From positions 62,001 through 126,000 of the forward strand of contig QPMI01000437.1 of NCBI GenBank assembly GCA_004431415.1: a stretch of 64,000 nt of DNA, read 5' to 3'. The notes under the pieces are model-generated. The model was given only the letters and a program-made list of their open reading frames with translations, was not told where the DNA came from and searched no databases. The translations under genes and the position numbers were made by a program. Positions within the stretch are counted from its first letter, which is position 1. Each line of letters starts with the position of its first letter. Below are positions 1-39,219 of the stretch, one piece after another. This stretch comes from Cyanophora paradoxa CCMP329. Taxonomy: Eukaryota > Plantae > Glaucophyta.

Positions 1-724
1 ATACTACCTGTCACACTTGATCTCAATTATTCTGTTTTATAGAACATATGCAATCTAATCGATTGTTCAATTGGAGACCATGCAACTCTGTGACAAGTTT
101 TAGGTGCAAAAATGTAAATCCGCAATCCCATCGATTGTTTAATTGGACGTGATGCAGTTCCGATATATTCCAATAGAAAATCCCGCAATATAATCGATTG
201 TTTAATTGGAGATAATGCAACTCTGTGACAGTTTTTGGGTGCAAAAATGCAAATCAGCAATCTCATCGATTGTTCAATTGGACACAATGCAACTCTGTGA
301 CACTTTTTGCGTTTTTCGATACAGAATGGGCGGTGGTCTACTTCAATACAAGAGAGATATATCGAGTTTTTGCGAATTTATGCAATTTAATCGCGATTAT
401 ATCGATCTTTAAGTAGTTTAATGCAAATTAATCGCAGATTTGTATGTAATCGACAAAGAACATAATCAATCGATATAAGATCAATTGATTCAATCGTAAA
501 TATGCATAAAGTTAAACGCGTTTTTCATTTTTAATACAAAGTTTGCATTAATTTATACAAAGTTTGCATAAAAAGTTAAAGAATTTAATCGATAAATACG
601 TATTTTAGTATTAATTTTGACACATATGTATAAACTTATTTAAATCCTGAGTGAATCGAGATCGCGAAGCGATCGAGATGAACGAGGGATTTAAATAAGT
701 TTATACATATGTGTAACGACCCCT
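1..724. mobile_element. Possible right end of an AT-rich DNA transposon/MITE (PIF/Harbinger-like) inside an intron of the WD40 gene
   Basis: An AT-rich block with subterminal repeats ends abruptly at GTGTAACGACCCCT|TAA (711-727), where GC-rich WD40 intron sequence resumes. The left end lies outside the window. Confidence 0.3.
58..310. repeat. AT-rich minisatellite, about 4 units of 63-72 bp
   Basis: ATCGATTGTT(C/T)AATTGGA..ATGCA recurs at 58, 130, 193 and 265. Confidence 0.8.
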
Positions 725-798
725 TAAGCTTGAGCCCTACAAGAAACCGAAGGCATGCAAGTGCATGGTTCTGTAGGTGCTGAGGGCGTGGGGCGCAG

Positions 799-3700
799 GA
801 CGGGAAGCGGATTGTGTCAAGGGACAAATGCTACAAATTTCTGGCGTGGGACACGGAGCTCGGGGTGGAGCCGCTGCAGCTGCAAGGCTTCCCGGACTTC
901 GGCTTGGCAGTGGCGTTGTCAGCGGTGCGCGAGAGCAAATGGGGCTAGAGCAGCCAAGAAATCGAAGCTCCCCAAAAGCTGGGGGCACATGGGGACCCGA
1001 ACCACTGATTGGCGCTTGACCCATGGTGCGCAGGATGGAAAGCGGATTTCGATATGCCAGCGGATTTGGAATTCGCAAGATGAGAATGACAAGGATGAGG
1101 ATGAGAATGCCGAGGATGACGAGCCTGTGATGCAGGTGTGCACATGCATGTGGGACACGGACTCCGGGGCGGAGCCGGTACGGTTGCAAGGCCACTTCGA
1201 CCGGTACCAGGACTATAGGGTGCACATGTCGGCGGTGCGTGAGATCGAATGCACGAATGCAGCGAATGCACGGGGGTGCAAACCGCTGATTGGGGTGCGG
1301 GGGCGTTTTGTTCACGTGGTGCGCAGGATGGAAAGCGGGTTGTGTTAAATTGGTGCAATGAGAATAACGATGGCATGATGCAAGTGTGGGACCCGGAGTC
1401 CGGAGTGGAGCTACTGCGGCTGCAAGGCCACACAGACGGGATCACCTCGGTGGCTGTGTCAGCGGTGCGCGAGGGAGGGTGCATGGTTGATTATAAAGTG
1501 GTGCAGCGAGCATGCAGGGGGGCTTACAAATGAAAAAGGAGGCCGCGAAGACGTGATAAAAAAACTTTAAAAAGCAGAGAAAATCTGTCAGCCCTTGGAA
1601 AGTTTGCGATAAGATTCAGAGGCGAACCAGACACGATGATTATATAAGATGAGGCCAGAGCAGCCCAGTTCACGTGCTCAAGCATGCATGGGAGCTTGCG
1701 GATAATAAAGGCAAACACAAGGATGGGATGAAGAGTGGAGAGAATTTGGCAACCCTCGAAAGGGTCACAATGAGAGACGAGTGAGCAAGTACACATGGCA
1801 AAGAGTTCTGACTGGGCATGGCGCATGTGCACAGGACGGGAAGCAGATCGTGTCCGGGGGCTTAGACATGTCGGTGCGGGTGTGGGACGCGGAGTCTGGA
1901 GCCGAGCTGCAACGGATGCAGGGCCATACGGGCTGGGTCAACTCGGTGGCTGTGTCAGCGGTGCGCAAGAAAAGGATTATGCATATGAATGGGGCGCCTC
2001 GACATGCAATTGCGGCGGGTTTGATGACAGTGGTGGCGGCTCAACGAATGTGATATCTTGATCCTCTAAAAGGAGCGAGTTCCCGGGGTCATAGAGCTCT
2101 GATTGGGGCGGGGGGACACGGCGCGCAGGACGGGAAGCAGATTGTGTCGGGGAGCTTCGACAAGTCTGTGCGGTTGTGGGACATGGAGTCTGGGGTGGAG
2201 CTATTGCAACTACAGGGACACACAAACCACGTCAACTTGGTGGCCGTTTCAGCGGTGCGCGAGAGAGGGCGGGGTCAGAGCAGCCGAGCAAGCATACGTG
2301 TACAGTACAGGGGGGCTTGCAGACAGTAATTATAAGGGTGGCTGTACACATTTGCGATAGCAAGCAGGGTGATTCTGTTGACCATCCCTATTTGAATTTG
2401 GATTCAAGGTGAGAAAGAATTTGGGATCATAGGTTCTGATCGGCCATGGGGCGCGGCGCGCAGGACGGGAAGAGGATCATGTCGCAGAGTGCCGAGGAGA
2501 AATCGATGCGGGAGTGGGACGCGAAGTCAGGAGTGGAATTGCTGCGATTGCAAGGCCACAACACGGACGTTCGAATTTACGATCTCGACATTGCGGCAGC
2601 GTTGGTAGTGCGTGAGAGAGGGCGGGTTCAGAGCAGCCTATAGCTAGCAAGCAAGCAGGGGAGCCAGCAGAGAGAATCTGAGAGAGGGTCACAAGCAGAG
2701 GCGAGCGATTATTTGGGGCCATAGGGCTCTAACAGGGGCCCGGGGGCTTGGTGCACAGGATCTGGACAGGAAGCGAATCGTGTTCGTCAGAAAAGACATG
2801 TCGGTGCGGGTGTGGGACGTGGAGTCCGGGGTGGAGCTGCTGCGGCTGGAGGGCCACACGGACGAGGTCACCTCGGTGGCCGTGTCAGCGGTGCGCGAGA
2901 GAAAACGGGGCCAAAGCAGCCCAGCAAGCATGCATATGCATGGGGGCTTAACGATTAAATACAATAAAGGCGACTGCAAGCTTAAGGATCTATCAAAGAG
3001 TATAAATTATTTTTTATTTGAATCATTCGACCCTCAAAAGGGTCACGATCAGAGGCGAGCAAGTGTACAAGGCCATTGGCTTTTTCAAATAATTTGACTG
3101 GGGCGCGGGGGCGTGGCGCACAGGACGGGAAGCGCATCTTCTCCGGCAGCAAAGACATGTCGGTGCGGGTGTGGGACGCGGAGTCGGGGGTGGAGCTGCT
3201 GCGGCTGCAAGGCCACACGGACGAGGTCAAAAAGGTGGCCGTGTCAGCGGTGCGCGTCACATATATGATGCATATGGGGCCAGAGCAGCCGAGTTCACAC
3301 GCTTAAGCATGCATGGGGACTTGTGGATAATAAAGGCAAAGGCGAGAATGGGATAAAGAGCGGAGAGAATCTGGCGATCGCGCGACCCTGTCGTCGTCGG
3401 AGCGGGCTTCAGGACCCGCGCAATACGTACAGGGAACCGTCCCGCGATTCTCATAACCCTCGAAAGGGTCACAATGAGAGACGAGTGAGCTCTAGTACAC
3501 ATGGCCATAGGGCGCTGACTGGGGCGCGGGGTCGTGGCGTACAGGACGGCAAGCGGATCGTGTCCGGCAGCAGCGATGAGTCGTTGCGGGTGTGGGACGC
3601 GGAGTCCGGGGCGGAGCTGCTGCGACTGCAGGGCCGCAGAGGCTGGATCACCCCAGTTGCCGTGTCAGGGGTGCGCGAGGGATGGTTTGGTGTCGAGCTG

Positions 3701-6318
3701 GCATAGCAAGTTACAAGGATTGATAAAGAATGAAGCGTTTACGTCGGTCCTCCCAATTAGCATTCGGGCCAGACGTGACCAAGCGCATAGCGCATGCGCA
3801 GTATATTGGTATTGACTGGAGCGTTGGGTCACAATGCGCAGGACGGGAAGCAGATCGCGCTGCTTGGCAGGGGCCCGGGTGGAAACGAGCTGTACATGTT
3901 GGACACGGAGTCGGGGGTGGAGCCGTTGAAAATTGAAATCCGCTTTTATGACAAGTACGCGCTGTTGGCAATGTCGAAGGTGCGCAGGAAATGGCACATG
4001 GTTGGGGCGCCCTTGTTTGCACATGCAGCCCTTTAAAATGGTTGGAGATATCGAGCGCTGATTGGGACGTGGGGCTGGTCCACAGGACTGGAAGTGCATC
4101 ATGTCCTGCACGCACAGCGAGGACGACACGATGCAGGTGTGGGACGCCGAGTCTGGAGCCGAGCTGCTGCGGCTGCGGGGACACACAAGCTGGATCACCT
4201 CGGTGGCTGTGTCGGCGGTGCGCGAAATCGAGGGATGGTGCATTGTCGATCATGAGGCGGGGCAGCGTGCATTAGGGGGGGGGGGGGGGGGGGGGGGTCT
4301 TACCAATGTTACCAATGAAAGGGAAGCTACAAGGCCGCGATAAATTAGCCGTTTGAAGAGCGGAGAGAATCCGTCGACCTTCAAAAGAATCATGATCAGG
4401 TACGTTGCCGTGGGGTTCTGATTTGGGCGAGGGGGCGCGGCATGTAGGACGGGAAGCGGATTGTGTCAGGAAGCGAGGACAAGTCGGTGCGGGTGTGGGA
4501 CGCGGAGTCCGGATCAAGAATGAAGATGCTGTTGCAGCAAGGGCAAACCAACGCAAGTGGCTTGGTGGCCATGCCTGCGGTGCGCGAAGGAGGGGGCGGG
4601 TCGAGGTGGCACAGCAAGCATGCAGGACCGGGCCAGGGGGCGTATGGTTTTAGTCAAGGCAGCCACAATTGCAAGGCCTAGGCCTAGGGCGTACTAAATT
4701 ATAAATGTTTTATAATTAAGAGCAGAGATAATCCGTCGACCCTTGAAAGGATCACGATCAATAAGAGATCCAGCTATAGAGGCGAGCAAGTGAAAAGTGC
4801 ATATTCTTCTGACTGGGTCGAGGGGGCGTGGCGCACAGGACGGGAAGTGCATCGTGTCCAGCAGCGGAGACATGTTGGTGCGGGTGTGGGACCCGAAGTC
4901 CGGAGTGGAGCTGCTGCGGCTGGAGGGCCACACGGACGAGGTCACCTCGGTGGCCGTGTCAGCGGTACGCGAGAGAAAATGGGGCCAAAGCAGCCCAGCA
5001 AGCATGCATATGCATGGGGGCTTAACGATTAAATACAATAAAGGCGACTGCAAGCTTAAGGACCTATCAAAGAGTATAAATTATTTGAATCATTCGACCC
5101 TCGAAAGGGTCACGATCAGAGGCGAGCAAGTGTACAAGGCCATTGGCTTTTTCAAATAATTTGATTGGGGCGCGGGGGCGTGGCGCACAGGACGGGAAGC
5201 GCATCTTCTCCGGCAGCAAAGACATGTCGGTGCGGGTGTGGGACGCGGAGTCGGGGGTGGAGCTGCTGCGGCTGCAAGGCCACACGGGTCAAGTCATCTC
5301 CCTGGCCGTGTCAGCGGTGCGCGAGAGATGGTGCATTTTTAATCATGAGCTCGAGGCGGCACAGCCAGCATGTGCATGCAGGGGGCCTAGGGCTTACAGA
5401 TTAAAAGGAAGTCAGAAAGACGTGATAAAGTTTTAAAGAGCGGAGAGCAATGCTCAGAGCATCGATATCCGTCGACCCTCGACAAATTGCACGACCGAAT
5501 CTAGAGGCTAGTGAGTTTACATGGCCGTTAGGTTTCTGACTGGGGCACGGGGGGCGTGGCGCACAGGATGGGAAGCGGATTGTATCAGGGAGCAACGACA
5601 AGTCCGTGCGAATGTGGGACACGGAGTCTGGAGAAGAGCTGCTGCATCTGCAGGAGCACACTGAAGCCATCGCATCGGTGGCCTTGGCGGTGTGTGCGGG
5701 ACGCCCAGGGGGCAGGGTTGCGCTGGTCCAGCTAGCATGCAGCAGGGCTCATGAACGGGATAGGAATGGCTCAAGGTCGCCTGTGATTTATCACTTATTG
5801 TTAAGACGACACGTGCTTTGTTTGATCCTGCACCATGATCGGACTCTGACTTCACACGCTTTGTTCATGTGCAGGACACTTCGTTTTCCCTCGTGCAGGG
5901 CAAGCTCGAGTCCACGATTCGGATCCTCGTGAAGTACGAGTCCGGGAGCCAGCGCGAGTGGTCCCTAATGATGGATCATGACCAGCCTCTTGTGGCCAAA
6001 ATCGTCCATGAAGAACTAGAGGAGAAGGCCAAATACGAGTTGTTTTCCTACGACGAGGCGAGAAGATTGCAGCGTGTGCAATTGAAAGCACGAAGCGCCC
6101 CTTCCTGTGCATCTGCCATTCTTCCGGTGCGGCCTGCGCATATGCATGCACTAGCGATTGGCGGTGGGGGCGGCGGCTTTGGATTTGCGATACGTGCACA
6201 CAGGGTGGCGGGGCGCTACTTGCCGTCGCTGGCCCGGCGGGTATTCGGGTGGAGCACGTCCCGGTTCGACCCCGGCCCATGCATACTGTCGATCCCGCCT
6301 ATATTGCAATTGGCTGAT
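799..6318 (+). CDS. WD40-repeat protein, 3' part; 15 single-repeat exons plus non-repeat C-terminal exons
   Basis: AG|GA(C/T)...|GT phase-0 exons: 799-924, 1034-1234, 1327-1464, 1835-1960, 2129-2254, 2464-2607, 2759-2890, 3124-3249, 3545-3670, 3842-3979, 4086-4217, 4448-4579, 4839-4964, 5191-5316, 5567-5689. Consensus DGKRIVSGSxDxSVRVWDAESGxELLRLQGHTxxVTSVAVSA. A unique exon follows from 5875 (DTSFSLVQGKLEST...). The 3' end is approximate and the 5' part is upstream of the window. Confidence 0.9.
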
Positions 6319-6911
6319 CATGAGCGGCGACCACCTGGGCAGCCCTTCCGATGCACGCGGCGCATTGCGCAGACTGCAAAGCTCGAAGCGCACGGGACAC
6401 TGGTACGAAGTCCCCCCTTCAATTTGACACTCCAATCGCAAATTTCGTATATACATGTCTCCCAACGCGCCGCCCACTCGGGCTCCGGGCGATCACAGAT
6501 TGACTCGAGCACGTCAATGGCGCCCCGCCTGCGGAGGCTGCTGCTCCAACTCGGAGCGGTCGACAAGGGCGCCCCGTAGCCTGCAGATTCGCATGCCAGT
6601 GGGCCGGGCGATGCAAATGAGAGCGATATCGATAGCTCCATTCTTGATTGCAGAAACACGTGCACACCTGCATTTTCCGTCTACATATCTAGCATTTTCG
6701 CGGCTATATAGCTATATATCTGTATACGTATGCAATGGCGCTCGGTCACTGTGGCCAGGCCGGCAGCCAGACTGACGGTCCTGCTCTAGATTCCCGGGCG
6801 CCAGCATGCACGCCTATAGCTATCCTATCCAAATCCCTTTCTGATCATGAGTACCGACGTCAACCGGCCGTGGCCCACGTCTGGCCCATGCATCTGGGCC
6901 CAACATTGACA

Positions 6912-7012: not shown

Positions 7013-10000
7013 ACCCTCCCCTCCCCGCTGCGCAGGCGGGGCCGGTGCAGCCGGACCGTGCGCCCGTGAAATCGCGTTGCTGCGGCGCCGGCTGGCGGAG
7101 GCGGAGGGTCGGCTCGCGGCGGCGGCGAGGCAGGAGGCCGGCCTCTCTGCGGCGCTGGTGGAGCGGGCTGCGCAGTCCGCCGCAGAGCTCCAGCAGCTGC
7201 GCGAACAGGCGCGCTCATGATCAAGAAAATTTCGCGCACCGCCCTCGGCGGCTTCGAATTCCGCTCTAATAAAATTGACTTCGGCACGACAGCTTGGGGA
7301 GAGACGAGCAGCTGGCGGAGCAAAAGGCCCACCTCGCCTTCCTGCAGGTGCTCGGCCGCTCCTTTTCACTTCCTAGGTTCCTTTCTATAGCTAGTACTTC
7401 CTGGCTTCCTTCCAAATTGAAATTAGTTCACTTTTCCCTTCCTGGCTTCCTTCGTAATTGCAATTAATTTTACAGATAGGCCGGGTCTCCTTGAACCCAG
7501 GCCTTTAAATCTCCAGTGGGTCACGCTCTCTGCAGCTGCAGCGGGAGTCGGACCGGGAGGCGGCGGAGGGGCTCAAGGCGGCCTTCGCGGCCCGCGACGA
7601 GGAGCGGGGCGGGGAGCTCGCGGCGGCGGCGGGGCGCGAGGCCGGCCTCCTCGCCCAGCTGCGGGCCCTCCAGGCGCGCTCGCGAGTTAAATTTCTCGGC
7701 GCAGCACGGTGATCTTCGATTCATATTTCGAATATTGAAATGCGCGCTTTTCGAAGCAGGAGCAGCACGAAGCAGATCGGCAGACCGTCCTCGGTCTGAA
7801 GGGGGATCTCAAGGTTTTCTCTTCGAATTCAAATATTTGCAAGGGGGGAAAGAAGACCGAAGGTCTTCCCCCCTTGCTTCCCGTTCCCTCGCTTCAGCCA
7901 AAAGTTTTCTATGAGGCCGTTTTCGAGGTCCAGTTTGCAACGAAAATGTGCCGTTATTCGCGATCTGATTGGCTCGGTGGACCGGTCAGCTTTCGAGCTC
8001 GCGAGAGCTCTCTCGAACTCGCGAGAAGTGGTCTTCGAATTCCTTCCGCGGTTCTGCATGCCATGATGGAACCAGTTCTCCCTATATATATAGCTAGCTG
8101 TCTCAACTAGATTTCGGCTTCGTCGCAGAGCGTCGCGTACGCCTTGCTCTTCGTTGCGCGGTTCTGCATACAATCACAGTGCGTGTGTACTTCCTAGCTG
8201 TCTCCTCTAGATTTCCGCTTCGAATTCCTTGCAGTGCGCCGCGTACGCCGCACGGTATCCGTGACGCCTGAACTACTTTTGACTGCATCAAGTTTGCACC
8301 GCAGCACTGCGTACCGAGCACGCGCCGCTGCGCGCAGCCGAGCACGCTGCCCGGCACTCGTGCTTGATAGAGCTTGCACCGCACTGCGGCAAAACCGCTT
8401 GCACCGCTGCCTATAGCTAGCTGCCGCAGTGCGCCGCTGATCGCAGCCGAGGACGCCAGGCCGTCCAGACTGTCATCTCTTGCTGCGCCGAATACGTCTG
8501 CGAAATCGAGTTTATACCGCAGTTTTGCGTGCGCCGCTGCCCGCGGCCGCAGCCGAGCACGTTGGCCGCGGCCCGGCCCGGCGCTTTTGTTGCGCTCGCG
8601 CGCGGTTGCCACTCCGCTGCACGGCTTCTCCGACTGGCGGCGGTGCTTGCTTCCGGCTACTAGGCTAGCAGCTTCGCGAGATTGCGCACTAGATGGGGCG
8701 GCGATCTAGATCTGCAGCCGCTTCTGTGCCCGGAGATGTCGTCCCTGGGCGAGATTTCCTGCCGTCGGACGCCCAATGCACGTTCTCATCGTCGTGCACT
8801 GGCGGAATTTGCTTACGTTGTCCGCCCGGAGTCCGTGAACACTTCTGCTATCGCAGAAGCTTGCTTCGTCATGTTCGGCAGCACAGTCGCAGCATCGCCA
8901 CGCAGGGCACTTACAATTCAGCAGTGAGCATGCGTGCGCAGTCTTCAGTTGGCGTGCAGCTGTCTGAAATTATATATATATATTGCATACACAGGTCGCC
9001 GCAGCTGAAGACCACAGAAGTCCTCCCACAGGCTTATCGTCACATTTTCCTCTGGCGGTACCCTCTCGTTAATTGACATGCATATCCCGCCCGCATTGAC
9101 GTGTACGCTCAGCCTGGAGCGTTTCAACTTCCTGAGAGGAACATTGGAGCAGAGCCGGCCCGTCAAATCAATCAGGTTTGCGATAGACTGATATATTCAT
9201 TTCGAATAATGTTAATGACTTGTTCCTCCAGGCTTTGCCACCATCGTCGATCGCAGTGCGTGATGAAACTCAAGAGACTTAAAAAAGCTTATTCAAATTG
9301 CTGAAATGCTGTGCAGGAATTCTCAACCTCCTCGAAACGCGTGCGCTGCAATGGGAGATCAGCTGATCGTGTATCGTTTTCGGACGAAAACGATCTGAAT
9401 CACGCGGACGAAAACGATCTGAATCACGCTGACTCAAGCCCCGAATTCCGCATTCCGAATTCTCAATCCCGAACTCATGGTCCCGATTTCCGCGAAAGCA
9501 AATGCGCATCCCGCGAAACTGAGCCATCCGTGAGCCGGGAAGTGCAACGGCTCGGTTTCCAACATCCCGGGCCGCATTGGAGAGCGGTGCGCCGTTTGGC
9601 ACCTGGTCCTTAATGCTATCCCTCAGTGCGTTCGCATCAGATGTCGTGCAGCACCTGCAAACGGCTTTTCACAGACAAGTTCTCGTTCGACCGGCACATC
9701 GAGCGTGCGAAGTGCTCGCCGCAGGCTGTACCTTCCGACATGTCTATTGCGGCAACGGCAGCGGTCGGCCAGTACCCGTGCAGGCAGTGCTCTATTATCT
9801 GTCCGTCGGCTCCTTCTCTTCGCCAGCACGAGGCTGCACACGCCCGAGGTAATTTTTGTGATGTTTTCCTGAACCAGATCGATGTAGTGACGTTGCCCGC
9901 AATGCAGAGGCTGCGGAGGACGTAGTCGAGTCAGAATGCAGCAGCAGTTCGTCCGAGGAATTCGAAGAAGCCGACCCGGCGTTAGGCCGCCGGAAGCGAA

Positions 10001-12329
10001 CGGCCAGACGGGCCACGCATAGCTGCGATCATGAGGGCTGCGGCTGGAGCGGCGCTTCTGCATCCTCTCTGCGGAAGCACAAAGAGAAGAAGCACCCTCC
10101 AGGTGGATTCTATTTTCGTGGACATGTGGATTCGGGATTCCCTCGCTAAATTGTCGATATCGCCGGTCAGATATCGCTCCTTGGGACGCACTGCCAGCTC
10201 TTACTACGACGTGGATGAAGACGTGGCCGCGAAACAGCACGTTTTGGACGTGCGCCTGCTGCGCGGAGTATCGGCCTGCCGCGGACTTCCCCAAATGCCC
10301 CTTCTTCCCTGCCTCGCTTGAGATCTTTACTCCCCTCTGGGTGTACAAGTGAGCACTCCGAACCTATTCTACATTTCCATTGCGCAGCACTTATCTGGGT
10401 GCAGGGAGGATATCGAGGCGCCCCCACCGTGGCAGAAACAGCTTGGCGTCGAAAAACGCGAGGGCTCTCTGCTGCTGCCGCCGGCCTTTGAGCGCGTCAC
10501 CGGAGCGGAAAGCCGGCCGGGCCTGCAGCAAATGCTAGCCGTACTCAAAGTCGAAGGCGACTCGGGCACCTTCGTCGAGTCGTGCCCTGGCAGGATGTGC
10601 ATGCGCGCAGCTGCAAGGTCGCCTGCAAATCGAACATTCCGCACTTTAATTTCGTCTTTGCCAGCGCTGCATCCCCACCCTCAAATCGGGCGACATGCCG
10701 CGAACAGCAGTGGCGTTGTGGGACTTCGGCTATATTCCCGAGGAGCTGAGCTGCCTGAACGAGGCGGAACGAAAGCTGATTGCGATTGTCAGCGGCGAGA
10801 CTCGCGTCCGTACACACCACCCTTCGGGCCAGCGCTTTACTCGTGGCAACTGCATCTCATTCTTCAACAAGATCAACGAACTCGTCCTCGTTCTCCCCCG
10901 CACGGCCGGGCAGTCCGAAACTGTTTACATTCAAACTGAGCCTCGGAGGGTGCGCCCGTCACCGTGACTCTGAAAGTGCGGCCCTGGCTCATTCGTCGCG
11001 CTCTCTTCTGGCTGAAAAAGGTTTGCGGCCCATTGTAATATTCTCTTTCAGGTGTTTGCAACAGCGGGTGAGACCTTGTGCGCGCGCTTCGCAGAACAAT
11101 ATTCTGTATAAAAACATCGACATCAGCGAGGAGAATTTGGCCACATACAATCGGAACGTCATGGTTGTCCCGCAGGCAGGCGACGTTGTGCATACAGCGG
11201 ACGGGCCCGTCAATTCCTCCGAAATAATTGAGTCTGCGAAGCATTTGCCGCTCGACGAGGATCCCGAAGATGCAAAGACGGGTGCGCAAAGATTCAAAAA
11301 AGTGGACCGCCCTTACCTGACCTCTGTTCATGATTGCCACGGCAGGCCTGCAATCGAGGACCTCCACATGGGAGTCCTCACGCGCATCCGAGACGCCGGC
11401 CTCGCGGATATCGAACTTCAAGACCTTGTCTACCAGATGCGCGGCGGGAGCGAGCAGCGCGCCAGCCGCGCGGCTCTGCAGGCGCTCGAGGCGGCGGGCC
11501 GCCTCACCATGCTCTCGCAGCAGGGCCCTCTTCAGGACCGGCGCCGCTGGCTGCCGCTCACCCGCACGGCCGACTTCCGCCCCGACCCCCTCCAGAAGGC
11601 CTGGATCGCCTACGTTTACGGCGAGCCCTCTGCAGACAGCACCATCATCTTTTAGCCAGCTGTTCAGGGTTAGCGGTAGTCCGTGCGAACACAGTTCATG
11701 CGCAGCGTTTTTCCGCTCCAGAACAATCTTTCTTATACAGTGCGCTGAATTTGGCCTTTCGTTGAGCCTTTTCTTTATTCGGTTTGATCTCAGCGCCTGA
11801 TTGGGTCTTTTCTACATCTGCTTATCGGGCCTTTTCTATTTTTTCAATCATAATCTGTGTTTATCTTTACACTTCAACCTGCCGCGCGCACTGGGCCGGG
11901 GTCGATCTACATTTGCCCCGTGCATGTTCGTGCCACTACGACTCTTTCATTAGATCCCGGTTCCCCCCTTGCACCCCCGGCGCGCCAAAACGCGGCCGGG
12001 CCCCTAGTAATTAGAACGCGATCATACATAATTGCTATTTGCGACTGTTCCCGAGTCCCGATCCGGCCGCCAGGTCCGCTCGCTGGAGCTTCAAGCGTCC
12101 CGACAGGAGCTCCGTGCTCACGTACAGGTCAGGATTCAACTTTGATTTGCGGCTTTCAACTAAATTTCCAATCCGGCACCAGGCTCGAAACGCGGAGGTG
12201 GCGGATCTTTTGCACCAGCTGCACGCTCAGCGCGAGTCGGCCGTGCTCTGGCGGCGGGCGGCGCTGGGCCCGGGCCAGCACGCGCATGGCGCACATGCAT
12301 CCCCTCACCAGTGGGGGCCGGAGATCTAG
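6912..12329 (+). CDS. Multi-exon coiled-coil protein of unknown function, host of the intronic Helentron-like element
   Basis: Heptad-rich exons: REIALLRRRLAEAEGRLAAA (~7035-7208), LQRESDREAAEGLKAAF (~7536-7673), EQHEADRQTVLGLKGDLK (7760-7813); after the insert, VRSLELQASRQELRAHVQ (~12074-12127) and ARNAEVADLLHQLHAQ...PEI* (12183-12329). Start codon uncertain. Confidence 0.55.
7838..12007 (+). mobile_element. Non-autonomous Helentron/Helitron2-like rolling-circle element
   Basis: 5' TGCAAGGGGGGAA (7838-7850) with a nearby inverted copy (7866-7877). Perfect 13-bp subterminal inverted copy TTCCCCCCTTGCA (11961-11973), then a GC hairpin (11976-12000) and CTAG|T. Flanks are T-rich with no TSD. 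Carries DUF6570-like coding sequence. Confidence 0.8.
9626..11655 (+). pseudogene. C2H2 zinc-finger + DUF6570-like (Helitron RepHel N-terminal) coding region, spliced and frameshifted
   Basis: CSTCKRLFTDKFSFDRHIERAKC and CRQCSIICPSAPSLRQHEAAH fingers. Then MPRTAVALWDFGYIPEELSCLNEAERKLIAIV...RGNCISF...LPR...KVRPWLIRRALFWLKK/NNILYKNIDISEENL. Frameshift near 10940; no HUH Rep or Pif1 motifs follow. Confidence 0.7.
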
Positions 12330-16617: not shown

Positions 16618-19600
16618 CTACTTAAAGACGACGACGATGATATGATGACACGACGCAAATTTTAAACCTAGGCCTGGGGCGGTACGACTTCCTGTATACT
16701 CCGAGGCTACAAAGGCTACGAGCGAGGGCGGCCGCAGTTGATCGACTTCTCGTACAACCGCCGGATCTCGGTGGCGACCGCAGCGTCCCCGCACCTGAGC
16801 GAGGGCTAAATTCGAAGGGCTACACGGAGCGCTAGAGGGGCGTGGGGCGCTGGTCGCACCGCTGCGTGGCGTCATCGACAAGCATGGCCACCTAGAAGAA
16901 CAACATTAAGAGCTCGAAGCTTCGCTGGATTCGACTTGCGCACCTCGACGTCTAGGCAGTCCATTGCGTTGTCGAGCGCGTCCACCAACTCCTCGCCGGC
17001 GTCAGCTGGCAGCTTCGCCTTCAGCCGCCCCCGCAGCGCGTCCGCCGGCCGCATCAGAAGCGCACGCCCCGTCAGTCCCAGCCGCCCCAGGCACCGGATC
17101 CTGCGAAGGGGGAGTGTCGGGTTGCTGGGGTGCGGGGACGGCGGGGCGGGGGCGGGAGCGGACTCGGGCGAGCCCTCGGGAAGAATAAACTTTCGGCGCA
17201 GCCACTCGAGGGTGACGGGAGCCGCCCAGTCCAGCACCGCTGCAGGGTCTGGCTCACTGCCGATGGCGGGGGCTGCCGGAACGCTCGTAGTAGAAGAAGA
17301 AGGCTGCGCATTTGGCGCTGCAACGGCATGTCAGGCGATGTGAGCGGGGGACGACCAGGCGAGTAGGAGAGTAATGGGAGAGGGGGGTTTTGGGGGTGGG
17401 AGGGTGTGATGGTCGGAATGGGATTGGGGGCACCTGGCGGGGGGGCGCTGTTGCTGCTTGAGAGGGGTGCTGGGGCGGCTGCAGCCGGCTCCAGCAGCGC
17501 AGGCCAGTCTGTAGTGTGCTGTCCAGACTCGAAGGGCCGTGTACCCGTGGCGGAGGTGCCTGCTGGCCACGAAAAGGCTTTAAATGCGAGCGAATTTGGG
17601 TGGCTCAGTTAGCTTTTGCCAAGGAGGGGGTACGGGTGCATAAGCTGATGTGCGGGAACCGACCTGATGCGGGCGTATTCGACACCAAGAAAGGGTCCGA
17701 CGGGAGTGCCTCTAGCTCTAGATCTGTGAGCGAAAGCGCGAGTCTGAGAGATTGAAGTCGCGCCGCAAGTAAGCAACAGACCTCCATGTGTATGCACGGT
17801 TCCAGCGTTGCCGTTGATTTGAAGCTCTAGATTTTGATCACGCACACTGTTGCTGCTCGCGGCTGCTTCCTCTGAGTCTCCGCTCCTCCCCTCCTCTGGA
17901 CCCGACTCCTTGAACAGCAGCGGCCGCTCGAGCTCGCTATTGATCTGCATGCAAGCCTGCGCCTGCGGTAGGGGGGCCCTGCAGCTGCGATGTGGGATAA
18001 AGCTGTGACTGCAACGGAGGTGAACAGGGCAACGAACGGGGCCGAGGGCGGAACGACGGGCGGGGCCGGGGGTGCCAGCGGGACGGCGGGCAGGGCGGGT
18101 GGTGCCGGCGGGACGGCCTGCGGGGCCGGGGGTGCCGGCGGGACGGCGGGCGGGGCCGAAAGTGGGATGAAGGGCGGGGCCCGGGGTGCCGACAGGACGG
18201 TAGGCGGCGCCGGTGGTGCCGGCGGGACGACGGGCGGGGCCGGGGGTGCCAGTGGGACGATGGACGGGGCCAAATGCGCATGCGGGACGAGGGGCGGGGC
18301 CGTGGCCGGGACGGCGGGTGGGGCCGGGGGTTCTGGCAGGACGGTAGGCGGCGCCGGTGGTGCCGGCGGGACGACGGGCGGGGCCGGGGGTGCCAGTGGG
18401 ACGACGGACGGGGCCAAATGCGCATGCGGGACGAGGGGCGGGGCCGTGGCCGGGACGGCGGGTGGGGCCGGGGGTTCTGGCAGGACGGTAGGCGGCGCCG
18501 GGGGTGCCGGCGGGACGACGGGCGCGGCCGAAGGTGCCAGCGGGACGACGGGCGGGGCCGCGGCCGTGCACGTGGGCGAAACAGCAGGCGGGACGGCAAA
18601 GGGGGCGGTGCTGGTGCGTAGGGGTGCTGGACTCGAGGGGATCGCTTGAGGGGCCTCTGCGTCCGCCTGAGCGGCTCCTGATCGCGAGCGGTGGGGGGCG
18701 CCCCGGGGTCCCACGAAGACGGCCCCAGGGCGGGGCTCGCCGGAAGACAGGGAGTCGCGATTGGTAGGGGCGGCAGAGGGGGCGGCCATGGGGGCTGTCG
18801 TGGAGTCTGAAGAGACGGACTCATCCTGCACATGCCTCGCCCCGCCCTCCCTCTCCCCTCCTTCAGAGCACGAGTACTCCTGCAGAGCACGTTGAGAAAA
18901 ACGCCTAGAGAACGGAAGATATAAATAACCAAGCACCTCGATCGCGAGGGCTCCCGTCTCCTCGGCGACAAACGCAACCGTCCTCGCCGGGGCCGCCTGC
19001 AACCCTGGGGGACGCTGTGCGGGCTGCGCCACCAGAACGCCGCTCCCTCGTGCAGAGACTAGCGGCCCGACAGCCTCACAGAACAGCCAGACTGCAACAG
19101 AGGCCTCGCATGCTCAACCAGCAGCGGGCGCCAGCCGCCCGATCCGGGCACCGACGGCTCTCACCGCAGGCCCGACTGAAACTTTCCCGCACGTCTTCCT
19201 GTGCCCGGGTCCGCATGCGGTCGCGCACCGCGCGGAGACTGCTCGCGAACTGAACCGACTTCTGCTCTGCGCATACAGAGAGGCCCACGGCCTCACAGCG
19301 CCGCCAGCAGGAGCCCTCCTTGCTCCCGACCTGGTCCCAATCTTCCTCCGCGTCGCGGACGACGACACCGAGGCGCGCAGCTACGATGGTAGGCCGTACG
19401 CGTATCCGCGCCTCTGGGTGCTCCAGGGCCTTGCTCCGCAGAGTCTAGAAAGCGCCCTCACACGCTGCCTGAACCTTGCACCCCGGTACGCGGCACGCGC
19501 AGCTAAACGCGTTCGGCAAACGCTTCTGGAACGGGCCCGACGCCTCTGGTCACGTCGCTGCGAAATCAACGCGGAGTGGGAACGCGACTGCCGCGTCTCC

Positions 19601-22600
19601 CAGGCCTCAAAGAAGCGACCGCGCCCGCCCCGCACGGGCGCCCGCGCCCGAGAGCGGGCCCGCGGCCCCCGGACCTGTAAGGAAGTCTGCGCCGCCTGCG
19701 ACGGGCCGATTCGCCTTCACAATCTACTCAACGCCGCTCGGAACGCAGACTGCCCACCGGAGTACGCGGGCTGGAAGGCGGCGCTCCGCGCCCAAGAGCT
19801 CTACGATTGCGTCAAGGTACGCCCTTGGGAGTCACATCCTAGCCCGCTCTAAACGGTACCCCGAGCCGCGCGAAAGGGGGGGGGGGGGGGGGGGGCTACG
19901 TCGGGAGGAGACTCTCGACACCACCTACCTACTACTTCACCATACCTAGTCCTCGAGAAACTTACCTGATCTACTCTTAGCCTCGCACACACTAGATATA
20001 GCCGCCCCGACCGACTCGCTGGGCCCCGCCCAAGCGAGCGCCTGCCTTGCCTCCCTCTCCCGCTCTGCCCTCCCGCTCGCTCTCTTGGCCCTGCCTCCCA
20101 TTCACGACCTCGCCCGCGCTCCTCGCGCCTCGACAGGGAGGGAACGATGGATCGGAAGGCTTGGCGGAAGGCTTCGGCTGGTCGTTGCACCCACCAGATA
20201 CCCCGGCCATCGTGCCAGGACCGTGGGTTGAAGGACCGCCGCGGAGGGGGGCTCGCAATTGCCCGCGGCGGGGGTGCGGCGGCTGGTTCGAGGCTGGAAG
20301 CCCTGCTGACCGAGAAATCCGACCCTCCCCCTCCCCGCCACGGCCGGCGCCGACCTTCTCCGTCCCGCCCCACTTCTTCCCCGCAACGTCCCCCCTCGCC
20401 TCATTCCCCTCGGCCCCTCTACGCCGACGTGCTTCCACCCGCGCTTCGGGCGAGCGGCCCCCTCGACGCGGAGCCCGCCGCGCTAGCTGTAGTCGCGGCC
20501 GCGTCGAGAGTAGGCAGATTAGACCGCGGGTCCGTCCTGGCTTTCCTACCGTACAGTAGAACAGCCCGCGAGCTCCGGACGTCCCGACAGTCCCTAGGCA
20601 GGCAGCACTAGCAGTAGTAGTGTTTTAATTTACCTCCCTCTCGTAGACCCTGGGTAGTCCTCTCGGTAGCCTAGTCCTAAGCTAGGCTAGATGTATAGGT
20701 AGTAGCTCTCTGCTCTGGGTTAGCTTTGCTTTAGTTTACGTCTCCTTGACTAGCTCCACCCTGTCCGATGGCTGATAGGTTCCCTACCCGGCGTAACCAG
20801 TAGGCTCATCTTTCGACTTGACACTTTACGGACTCCTCAGTTCTATCATTAGCCGTATTGTCTCGGTGTGTGCGAATTCACTAATGGGATGCACGGTTCC
20901 AGCGTTGCCGTTGATTTGAAGCTCTAGATTTTGATCACGCACACTGTTGCTGCTCGCGGCTGCTTCCTCTGAGTCTCCGCTCCTCCCCTCCTCTGGACCC
21001 GACTCCTTGAACAGCAGCGGCCGCTCGAGCTCGCTATTGATCTGCATGCAAGCCTGCGCCTGCGGTAGGGGGGCCCTGCAGCTGCGATGTGGGATAAAGC
21101 TGTGACTGCAACGGAGGTGAACAGGGCAACGAACGGGGCCGAGGGCGGAACGACGGGCGGGGCCGGGGGTGCCAGCGGGACGGCGGGCAGGGCGGGTGGT
21201 GCCGGCGGGACGGCCTGCGGGGCCGGGGGTGCCGGCGGGACGGCGGGCGGGGCCGAAAGTGGGATGAAGGGCGGGGCCCGGGGTGCCGACAGGACGGTAG
21301 GCGGCGCCGGTGGTGCCGGCGGGACGACGGGCGGGGCCGGGGTGCCAGTGGGACGATGGACGGGGCCAAATGCGCATGCGGGACGAGGGGCGGGGCCGTG
21401 GCCGGGACGGCGGGTGGGGCCGGGGTTCTGGCAGGACGGTAGGCGGCGCCGGTGGGGCCGGCGGGACGACGGGCGGGGCCGGGGGTGCCAGTGGGACGAC
21501 GGACGGGGCCAAATGCGCATGCGGGACGAGGGGCGGGGCCGTGGCCGGGACGGCGGGTGGGGCCGGGGGTTCTGGCAGGACGGTAGGCGGCGCCGGGGGT
21601 GCCGGCGGGACGACGGGCGCGGCCGAAGGTGCCAGCGGGACGACGGGCGGGGCCGCGGCCGTGCACGTGGGCGAAACAGCAGGCGGGACGGCAAGGGGGC
21701 GGTGCTGGTGCGTAGGGGTGCTGGACTCGAGGGATCGCTTGAGGGGCCTCTGCGTCCGCCTGAGCGGCTCCTGATCGCGAGCGGTGGGGGCGCCCCGGGG
21801 TCCCACGAAGACGGCCCCAGGGCGGGGCTCGCCGGAAGACAGGGAGTCGCGATTGGTAGGGGCGGCAGAGGGGGCGGCCATGGGGGCTGTCGTGGAGTCT
21901 GAAGAGACGGACTCATCCTGCACATGCCTCGCCCCGCCCTCCCTCTCCCCTCCTTCAGAGCACGAGTACTCCTGCAGAGCACGTTGAGAAAAACGCCTAG
22001 AGAACGGAAGATATAAATAACCAAGCACCTCGATCGCGAGGGCTCCCGTCTCCTCGGCGACAAACGCAACCGTCCTCGCCACGGCCGCTGAAACGTCTCC
22101 CCACCGGCTGCGACCATATGCCGTCGGGTCGTGCGGGTGGGGACTGAAGCCGGGTACCAAAACGCACGTCGGGTCGCTGAAGCCAATTGCAGGGCGCTCT
22201 GTTGCAAGTTTCATGTAGAACGTCTCGCTCCTGTACCCTGAGACATTTGTCGATGTATGTGAGAATAGATATAGAGCTGAAGCTTAAGCTGGCCTGGTAT
22301 TAAACTCATAGAATAGACAGAAAGCACAGGTACCCTTCAGAGAAAAAGAGAAGCTAAAACCGTGCTGGTGTGTACCCATGCCAAACCTGGCGCCGGTGCT
22401 GCCTTCAGGGCGACGATTCATCCCACTGAAAACGTGAGCGCACCATGCCAGCCGGCAGCGGTCCCGAAATTGCAGGGCTTCCTTCATCGAGGGAAGCAGA
22501 GGTGAGATGACCTGCTTCGGAGTGGGAGATGAGCAGCGCTAGCTGCAGCCTGAAGGACTGCAGTAACAGCACCTTCACATCTTCAATATTGAAGGATGCA

Positions 22601-37763: not shown

Positions 37764-39219
37764 ATGCGCTGGAGACCGGCGCTTTCCGCCAGTTCTCGTC
37801 CAAGCCAGCGCCCGGAGCCGGCGATGTTTGTGTCGGCGCTGTGCGGGGCATGCGTTTCGAGAGGCCCTCGGCACGCGGCGCTGCTGCGTCCGGCGTTGAT
37901 CGGGCGCGCCCTCCGCACCTCGGCCCAGCCGAAGACGGGCGGGGCGCAGCGGCACGCGCACCATGCGGCCGGTGTCGTGGCATCAGCTGACCGCGCCGTG
38001 GAGCCCGCAAGCGAGTCCGCGCTGCCCCCGCCGCTGCTGAGCGTCGCCCGTGCGACCCCGCCCCGCCCCGCCCCGCCCGCCCCGCCCCGCTGATTCACAG
38101 ACTTCTTCGCACCAGCTATGATGGATTACACCGGTTCGTCGATCCCCTCATCCTCTTCCCCTCTTCTGCCCCCTGCAAGCGCTGACTCCGCCCGGCTCCG
38201 CAGACAAGAACATGCGGTACATGATGCGGCTGCTGACGCGGAAGACGTGGCTGTACACGGAGATGGTTGTCGACAGCACCATCGTCCACAACCCCGTCGA
38301 CAACGACCGCTGGCTCGGGTACCACCCCGTCGAGGTGCTTCGGCGTCGGCTGCTCACGCGCTCGCTCCACTTAGCGGCGGCGCGCAGCATCCGGTCGTGC
38401 TGCAGCTGGGCGGGTCGCGCCCCGATCAGCTCCGGGAAGCCACGCGAATCGCCTCGGCCCGAGGCTACGACGAGATCAGTGCGCCCCGCACGCGCGTGCC
38501 CCTCGCGCCCTTCGCTCCCCACTGACAGCGCCCTCTCAGATCTGAACTGCGGCTGCCCGAGCGACAAGGTGTCCGGCAAGGGCTGCTTCGGGGCCTCCTT
38601 GATGCTCGATCCTCAGGTGATCTGAGCGCGATCCCCCCCCGCCCCCCCCCCCGCCCCCCCGCCCCAGCTCAACTTCGTTCGCAGCGCGTGGCGGACATCA
38701 CCGCGGCGATGAACGAAGTGGCGTCGGTACCCGTCACGGTCAAGTGCAGGATCGGTGCGGCCCTGGAGCTCGCGCCCCCGTCCCCGATTCATTCATTCAT
38801 GTGTACCCCCCTTCCCCCCTACAGGCGTCGACGACCGCGACTCGTACGAGGAGCTCGCGGTCCGCTTTTTTTCTTTCTTTCTTTCGGCGCAGCGGTTCCC
38901 GCCCGCCCGGCCCCCTCCCTCCCTCACACTTTCGGCGCAGGAGTTCGTGTCGCGGGTCTCGGAGGGCGGGGGCGTCCGCCACTTCGTCGTCCACGCCCGC
39001 AAGGCCCTCCTCAACGTGCGCGAGCCCCGGCCCCGGATCCAGAGTTCTCTTAGTCTATCTAGAGCTCTCTAGAGGTAGAGCTAGAGCCAGAGACTATCTC
39101 TAGGTCTAGTCTCTCTCTAGTGAGCGCCGCCCCCGAGCTCGATGTCCCAGATCTAGATCTAGAGCTCGTCCTTCCTCCCCCCAGCTCTCTTCCCCTCTCC
39201 AGCGCCCCAACTGCACCCG

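Follow-up and report, generated by a model that had tools for sequence, protein, structure and literature searches.

In the Podospora anserina HNWD/NWD NLRs (het-d, het-e, het-r), the WD40 repeats are 126 bp long and show high internal conservation (PMC1805685, PMC12222747), and in HET-E-like (NWD) NLRs in general the 42-amino-acid tandem WD40 repeats are more than 80% conserved within a gene. The hypervariable positions of the HET-E repeat are 10, 11, 12, 14, 30, 32 and 39 (PMC12222747). Repeat exons that are alternatively spliced have been reported for the ROCO and NB-ARC-TPR genes of brown algae (PMC11378527). A 64,000-nucleotide stretch of contig QPMI01000437.1 of the glaucophyte Cyanophora paradoxa, hereafter the window, contains an array of WD40 exons that is most likely the recognition part of an algal immune receptor and a variant of known hypervariable NLR sensors; a search of non-subscription literature yielded no description of a one-repeat-per-exon WD40 NLR sensor, nor of NACHT-WD40 receptors in glaucophytes.

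The first-pass annotation of the window had listed fifteen phase-0 WD40 exons between positions 799 and 5689, bordered by AG and GT, and all of them were found on the plus strand with exactly the lengths claimed (126, 201, 138, 126, 126, 144, 132, 126, 126, 138, 132, 132, 126, 126 and 123 nt). Exon 1 (799-924) is divergent and has lost the His and Asp of the tetrad, exon 2 (1034-1234) is divergent and carries the acidic insert described earlier, and exon 10 (3842-3979), as radically changed as had been reported, has lost the tetrad and is the most divergent among the exons of normal length. Exons 4 (1835-1960) and 5 (2129-2254) are canonical, exon 6 (2464-2607) is divergent in its 3' half, and the array is completed by exons 3 (1327-1464), 7 (2759-2890), 8 (3124-3249), 9 (3545-3670), 11 (4086-4217), 12 (4448-4579), 13 (4839-4964), 14 (5191-5316) and 15 (5567-5689). 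Searches run exon by exon gave Pfam WD40 matches for exons 4, 8 and 12 and none for exons 1, 2 and 10, and a profile of the canonical exons hits WD40 propellers of known structure. Canonical exons are 70-92% identical to each other at the nucleotide level (84-92% for exons 7, 8, 13 and 14), while 7 of the 15 exons are strongly divergent, and the blades total about 16-18, with no tidy 7+7 arrangement.

There is one repeat-length exon per repeat, in symmetric phase. An Asp codon opens each of the 15 exons directly after AG, GT directly follows each exon end, and all acceptors except that of exon 1 (14 of 15) have a YTRAY branch-point-like motif at a distance of 27-41 nt on their upstream side (27-31 nt in 13 cases); splice signals of this kind suggest splicing at exactly the annotated sites, across introns of 92-370 nt. 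The length of 8 of the 15 exons deviates from 126 nt, every time by a multiple of three (P ~1.5e-4), and the reported absence of stops is borne out, with none in 15 exons against 11.2 expected under simulated neutral drift, in which 0 of 20,000 runs remained stop-free. Beyond exon 15, a candidate next or terminal exon at 5875-6073 (plus strand, phase 0, branch point at -29, 3' end provisional) is predicted to form four beta-strands and a helix and is possibly a cryptic closing blade. No credible homologue of this exon emerged from the Atlas (best 0.77) or from a fold search (best Z 3.9), both of which were uninformative, and its sole phmmer match, a bacterial carboxypeptidase-regulatory repeat protein, was rejected as spurious.

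The exons had been taken to be propeller blades. They are not: each intron interrupts a blade after strand a and before strand b, such that each exon encodes strands b-c-d of one blade and strand a of the next. The introns of the array are homologous to one another: the founding repeat already carried a phase-0 intron separating strand a from strand b, and tandem amplification then multiplied this exon together with its intron. The same amplification of exon+intron units by unequal crossing-over is found in another unicellular eukaryote, in the 90-bp-exon LRR genes of Tetrahymena, which differ from the array in encoding LRRs, in their phase-2 introns, in their association with retrotransposons and in not being NLRs (PMC6564038).

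Tandem duplication of one exon+intron unit also accounts for the phase-0 symmetry, which the first-pass annotation had read as a sign of in-frame skipping. Were combinatorial skipping of symmetric exons, that is, alternative splicing, the main diversifier, each skip would pair strand a from one blade with b-c-d from a different one, creating new top-face combinations. The uniform phase 0 and near-identical splice signals of all exons would permit this, the degraded branch point at exon 1 and the poor-looking blades of exons 1, 2 and 10 might make these exons skippable, and the brown-algal ROCO and NB-ARC-TPR genes provide a precedent (PMC11378527). Symmetry is nonetheless an automatic product of tandem duplication, and the proposed skipping found no isoform evidence; this copy was undetected in two putative RNA runs, and no exon-skipping GT..AG joint is present among the joints listed for them. 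DNA contigs of other loci fit the joints 2896>3100, 1479>2105, 2899>1815, 4223>4446 and 5322>3503, which consist of exon end plus donor and acceptor plus exon start. Nor is there a recurrent inverted repeat that would supply docking/selector base pairing between exons, and at 92-370 nt the introns are not short enough for steric exclusion, both of which set the array apart from Dscam-type mutually exclusive cassettes. A closed propeller also tolerates a change in blade number less readily than an open LRR/TPR solenoid tolerates a change in repeat number, and skipping as the main source of diversity is considered unlikely.

Recombination, by contrast, has left a direct trace. A tract at 2831-3220 (plus strand), spanning the 3' half of exon 7, intron 7 and most of exon 8, recurs at 4905-5287 (plus strand) as the 3' half of exon 13, intron 13 and most of exon 14, with 0 exonic mismatches, 5 intronic mismatches and a 7-nt indel. 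It is the only datable rearrangement in the array, and the duplication is real in both DNA runs, where it appears as a collapsed contig at 1.5-1.7x depth. The first copy comprises strands a-b-c of one blade, all seven variable sites and the flanking d strands. Both breakpoints are intra-exonic, and the unit that moved is one whole blade with its intron. The repeats have been swapped, by unequal crossing-over or conversion, through HET-E-style recombination with breakpoints in the conserved exon core, copying whole blades together with the intron; the genomic shuffling proposed earlier holds, whereas the exon as the shuffled unit does not. Triplet chimera scans were set aside, since shared divergence confounds them, and a block duplication with a period of 8, from exons 2-3 to exons 10-11, was rejected because, despite shared derived residues, its tree support is weak (55/72).

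The brown-algal ROCO-LRR and NB-ARC-TPR genes share with the array a repeat-length exon per repeat and genomic shuffling, and both are candidate algal immune receptors (PMC3341825, PMC11378527). They differ in that the array encodes a closed WD40 propeller and the ROC-COR/NB-ARC receptors an LRR or TPR solenoid, and in the position of the array's breakpoints inside exons. Unlike the brown-algal receptors, the array lacks antisense or inactivated spare exons; tblastn and nhmmer searches of both strands found no extra repeat copies in the introns, on the minus strand or in the rest of the window.

The pattern of variation supports the hypervariable HET-E/NWD-type WD40 sensor that had been suggested. 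The seven HET-E positions correspond to columns 10, 12, 19, 32, 33, 34 and 36 of the array alignment, and pairwise difference at these columns is 0.72-0.79, compared with 0.23-0.39 elsewhere (permutation p ~1e-5). Measured against the consensus, pN/pS of the canonical exons is 0.31 outside the hot sites and 1.34-1.56 at them (1.34 at six), or ~1.0 at hot sites over all 15 exons, the hot-site values resting on ~6 synonymous changes, so that dN/dS >1 is not statistically established. The scaffold is under purifying selection, and amino-acid change is concentrated on the HET-E top-face positions. The array and the Podospora HNWD/NWD NLRs have in common 126-bp WD40 repeats, the seven sites of variation, the exchange of repeats through recombination and a mix of canonical and cryptic blades; they differ in the intron in every repeat and the lower internal identity of the array, whose allorecognition role or ligand is putative, by analogy.

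The closest relatives of the array repeats are intronless bacterial WD40 arrays (up to ~66% identity), and none of 164 related loci has two or more intron-like spacings. Within 42 conserved-repeat arrays of these relatives, columns 10, 34, 36, 33 and 12 also vary (Spearman 0.51, p=6e-4). Nine of ten sampled N-termini carry NACHT/NB-ARC/nSTAND1-type STAND ATPases, and six of those nine also have TIR_2 or DUF4062. Bacterial TIR/DUF4062-NACHT/NB-ARC/nSTAND1-WD40 proteins share the closest repeat sequences and the variable columns with the array, which differs in having an intron in every repeat. Two homologue searches with single exons gave no matches, a profile search returned short fragments only, none of them a protein of C. 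paradoxa itself, and DNA patterns of the exon/intron boundaries and of the hairpin described below had no match in metagenome or viral collections. Given that the window has no NTPase exon, the array might instead belong to a stand-alone WD40 scaffold gene, unlinked to a NACHT gene and homogenised only by recent duplication. This is very improbable, as exon 1 is an internal exon without a start, and the HET-E-site variability, the 70-92% identity of canonical exons and the STAND-linked relatives are atypical of housekeeping WD40 proteins.

Upstream, the array's gene is apparently interrupted, the array being its 3' part. Positions 1-714 form the AT-rich terminus (GC 0.40 versus 0.55-0.7) of a hairpin-ended integrated element of 45-55 copies, apparently within an intron; its summed contig depth in the two DNA runs is 4150/4385, versus 78/99 in the adjoining single-copy array. 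The terminal hairpin (620-714) has 46-bp arms and a GCGAAGC loop (z=-11.5), and an Rfam match to MIR2630 was dismissed as covering this hairpin only, with a score far below the gathering score. The residual host intron and exon 1 acceptor follow at 715-798 (plus strand), with a degraded branch-point motif; this 84-nt flank gave no alignment to other introns above shuffle level, and an exact look-up of an ORF at 755-1345 found no record. Contigs covering 685-1780 bridge the element-host junction in both DNA runs.

Insertion of the element in the intron may explain why this copy is not seen in RNA. In the two putative RNA runs, available as contigs from which rare words were dropped, no contig is at least 99% alike, and depth is zero in bins over exons 1, 2, 3 (5' part), 6, 10 and the 5875 exon, with paralog transcripts at depths of 4-50. 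Recent inactivation of this copy, in which the insertion prevents splicing, introns in this genome being short, and leaves the array at most a repeat donor to expressed paralogs, agrees with these data, with the presence of the insertion in both DNA runs, with pN/pS of at least 1 against the consensus in exons 1 and 10, and with the pseudogene repeats of Podospora NWD genes (PMC1805685). It is nevertheless distinctly unlikely: NLR expression is often low or inducible, the RNA sample is small, and since all 15 exons retain their AG/GT borders and are free of stops and frameshifts, any inactivation would have to be very recent. Exon order is identical in the 2012 and 2024 DNA wherever contigs cover the array, and no length polymorphism was seen there, although the two runs perhaps come from a single strain and none of the contigs covers the array from end to end. 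A speculative and quite improbable reading, for a family of algal NLRs, combines two layers, in which DNA recombination swaps blades, exon skipping recombines half-blades and an intronic endogenous virus gates this copy; strand-a sites would then be set against strand-b/c sites, creating new binding faces, and a full-length NLR would require removal of the virus by splicing or excision.

The favoured interpretation, with a probability of roughly 0.6, is that the array encodes the WD40 sensor at the C-terminus of a STAND/NLR-type receptor, diversified by DNA recombination and mostly constitutively spliced. The exons would be joined, for the most part constitutively, into about two propellers that may recognise a ligand, either non-self or modified self, and thereby activate the NTPase/TIR part, and diversity would arise at the DNA level between lineages and paralogs, as in Podospora het-d/het-e. 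The strong divergence of seven exons, the untidy blade count, the lack of length polymorphism in the DNA runs and the missing transcripts of this copy weigh against it. The locus combines the diversification signature of fungal HET-E with the exon architecture of brown-algal receptors in a unicellular alga. Its introns record recombination breakpoints that the intronless het-e arrays hide, and reveal the structural blade as the unit of exchange. Whether DNA recombination or splicing is the source of receptor diversity in protists, a question still open for brown algae, thus becomes directly testable.

The 15 one-repeat WD40 exons of the array (799-5689, plus strand) proposed in the first-pass annotation were recovered, lengths included, by direct re-reading of the sequence: each is preceded by AG, followed by GT, in phase 0 and stop-free (15/15), and the repeats are WD40. 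The introns (92-370 nt) begin with GTGCG in nearly all cases and end in CAG, with one TAG, and a branch-point-like motif lies 27-41 nt before each acceptor except that of exon 1. There (769-798), the motif is mutated and an alternative, out-of-frame AG occurs at 775-776; exon 1 is the best candidate for skipping within the array. All indels, which occur in eight exons, have lengths divisible by three (P about 1.5e-4), and when the array consensus was mutated to the observed exon divergences, drift gave a mean of 11.2 stops and never the observed zero (0/20,000 runs). Thus, the reading frames are preserved beyond chance. No further repeat copies were found on either strand of the window.

Resemblance to the hypervariable WD40 repeats of HET-E, the Podospora NWD-type NLR sensor, had also been proposed, and this claim held. 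The seven positions that diversify in the HET-E repeat (PMC12222747) correspond to exon columns 32, 33, 34, 36, 10, 12 and 19. Pairwise difference at these columns is 72-79% versus 23-39% elsewhere in the exons, an excess (permutation p about 1e-5) that persists with recent duplicates dropped. Within 42 arrays of relatives with conserved repeats, it is again these columns that vary (Spearman 0.51, p=6e-4). It is highly improbable that the array is a generic WD40 scaffold. In a site-wise check of selection, six hot sites of the eight canonical exons reach a pN/pS of 1.34 versus consensus, and the remaining sites 0.31. Overall dN/dS among exons is 0.46-0.60. Positive selection at the six hot sites is suggested, short of statistical demonstration.

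A WD40 sequence repeat comprises strand d of one blade and strands a-b-c of the next (PMC12222747). The array introns separate strand a (VxSVAVSA) from strand b (DGKRIVSG); each exon therefore encodes strands b, c and d of one blade together with strand a of its successor, and the equation of exon with propeller blade fails. Nor is the exon the unit of shuffling. In the sole datable rearrangement, 2831-3220 (exons 7-8) matches 4905-5287 (exons 13-14): the exonic part, about 157 nt, is free of mismatches, five mismatches are intronic, and there is a 7-nt indel. The tract opens within the conserved core of exons 7/13 and ends directly after GHT in exons 8/14, with its breakpoints lying inside exons; it spans a single whole blade, its intron and all seven variable sites. 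The duplication is real: in both DNA runs the copies merge into a single contig whose depth is 1.5-1.7 times that of single-copy sequence. Older homologies between introns 3/8, 3/11, 11/12 and 11/14 record earlier rounds of recombination. Relative to its homologue intron 3, intron 8 carries an insertion of ~80 nt (3376-3455) without an Rfam match. Exons 2/10 and 3/11 (1034-1464, 3842-4217) have derived residues in common, ordered alike at lag 8, which hints that an older block, perhaps of propeller size, was duplicated; tree support for this is weak.

Of the two routes first suggested, exon skipping and genomic shuffling, the copied tract bears out the second, but the joints listed from two putative RNA runs include no GT..AG joint that skips an exon. 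The phase-0 symmetry read as a sign of in-frame skipping is demanded by duplication itself, because any such duplication needs it to survive, and it is no evidence for skipping. Splicing-based diversification is known from brown algae (PMC11378527), whose type of exon architecture the array has; here it is doubtful, as there is no docking/selector pairing in the array, no spare exon pool in the window and no isoform found. It would be of interest in that one skip would fuse half-blades.

Twenty DNA runs from one organism contain 90-95% of the window's words and four putative RNA runs next to none. Two of the latter, compared with the window at 80% likeness as contigs with rare words dropped, contain no contig at least 99% alike to the array, and depth is zero in bins over exons 1, 2, 6, 10 and a candidate next or terminal exon at 5875..6073. 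They do contain many pieces (80-99% alike) of paralogs, often starting at exon starts and running on into the VAVSP end of the preceding repeat; this fits spliced or intronless paralogs, short of proof for splicing at the array's sites. Exon order and sequence are identical in 2012 and 2024 DNA, probably of one strain, where contigs reach; since these contigs omit rare words, neither silence nor invariance of the array is proven. DNA contigs of other loci in the same organism carry an exon end and donor on one side and an acceptor and exon start on the other, and the paralogs therefore have the array's exon boundaries. Most paralog contigs have about half this locus's depth in both DNA runs, with GC bias or heterozygosity as candidate causes.

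Upstream, directly before a host intron remnant (715-798), lies the AT-rich end of a multi-copy element (1-714), closing with a 46-bp hairpin (620-714; GCGAAGC loop, z=-11.5), with a summed contig depth about 45-55 times the array's. Its junction with the host is bridged by single-copy contigs (685-1780) in one 2012 and one 2024 run and is thus not an assembly error. Recent inactivation of this copy of the array by the insertion is unlikely. The element's terminus (420-714) is present at about 45-55 copies; among DNA contigs its hairpin comes in variants in which GCGAAGC units are repeated, and hence several related ends exist. For the Cyanophora paradoxa assembly, the supplement to an endogenous-virus survey gives a count of 366 (PMC10120064). 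Downstream, the 5875..6073 exon (plus strand, phase 0, good branch point) yielded no homologue; modelled at low confidence as four strands and one helix, it may close the propeller. On the minus strand at 6150-6590, coding-looking frames and an acceptor near 6590 point to a putative convergent neighbour gene. In one paralogous DNA contig, the end of a WD40 exon is joined to sequence resembling 6339-6380, where there is weak paralog RNA cover.

Elsewhere in the window, 17990-19030 and 21087-22214, some 3.1 kb apart, are near-identical copies of one GC-rich block of tandem repeats (period 30/144). C2H2 zinc fingers are followed by further frames (9623-11655) that presumably resemble a Helitron-associated region; two pieces had no Pfam match. 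Exons at 38204-39015 we take to resemble tRNA-dihydrouridine synthase; a 45-aa piece had no Pfam match.

Related loci came from metagenome, viral and bacterial collections; all 164 are tandem arrays, none with two or more intron-like spacings. Ten long N-termini were sampled from the loci with the best scores. Nine of them are STAND ATPases (NACHT/NPHP3_N, NB-ARC, nSTAND1, AAA_16), six of these carrying TIR_2 or DUF4062, and the tenth is a kinase; the best short match lies within a fragmented TIR_2...WD40 locus. NLR-like proteins are enriched for high internal conservation (PMC13449251). A Haliscomenobacter plasmid locus (L003 732-7709) with related repeats spreads SIR2 - nSTAND1 - WD40 - WD40 over adjacent genes and is likely a defence system.

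The array resembles HET-E in its pattern of variation and in recombination, and we favour, with a probability of roughly 0.6, an NLR sensor diversified like het-d/het-e: point changes would gather on the propeller top face, recombination between repeats would shuffle the array at the DNA level, and introns would travel along as passengers of the recombined repeats. The literature searched contained no description of a HET-E-type WD40 sensor with brown-algal-type exons; the array is a real feature and would be a hypervariable sensor of this kind, of putative NLR class.
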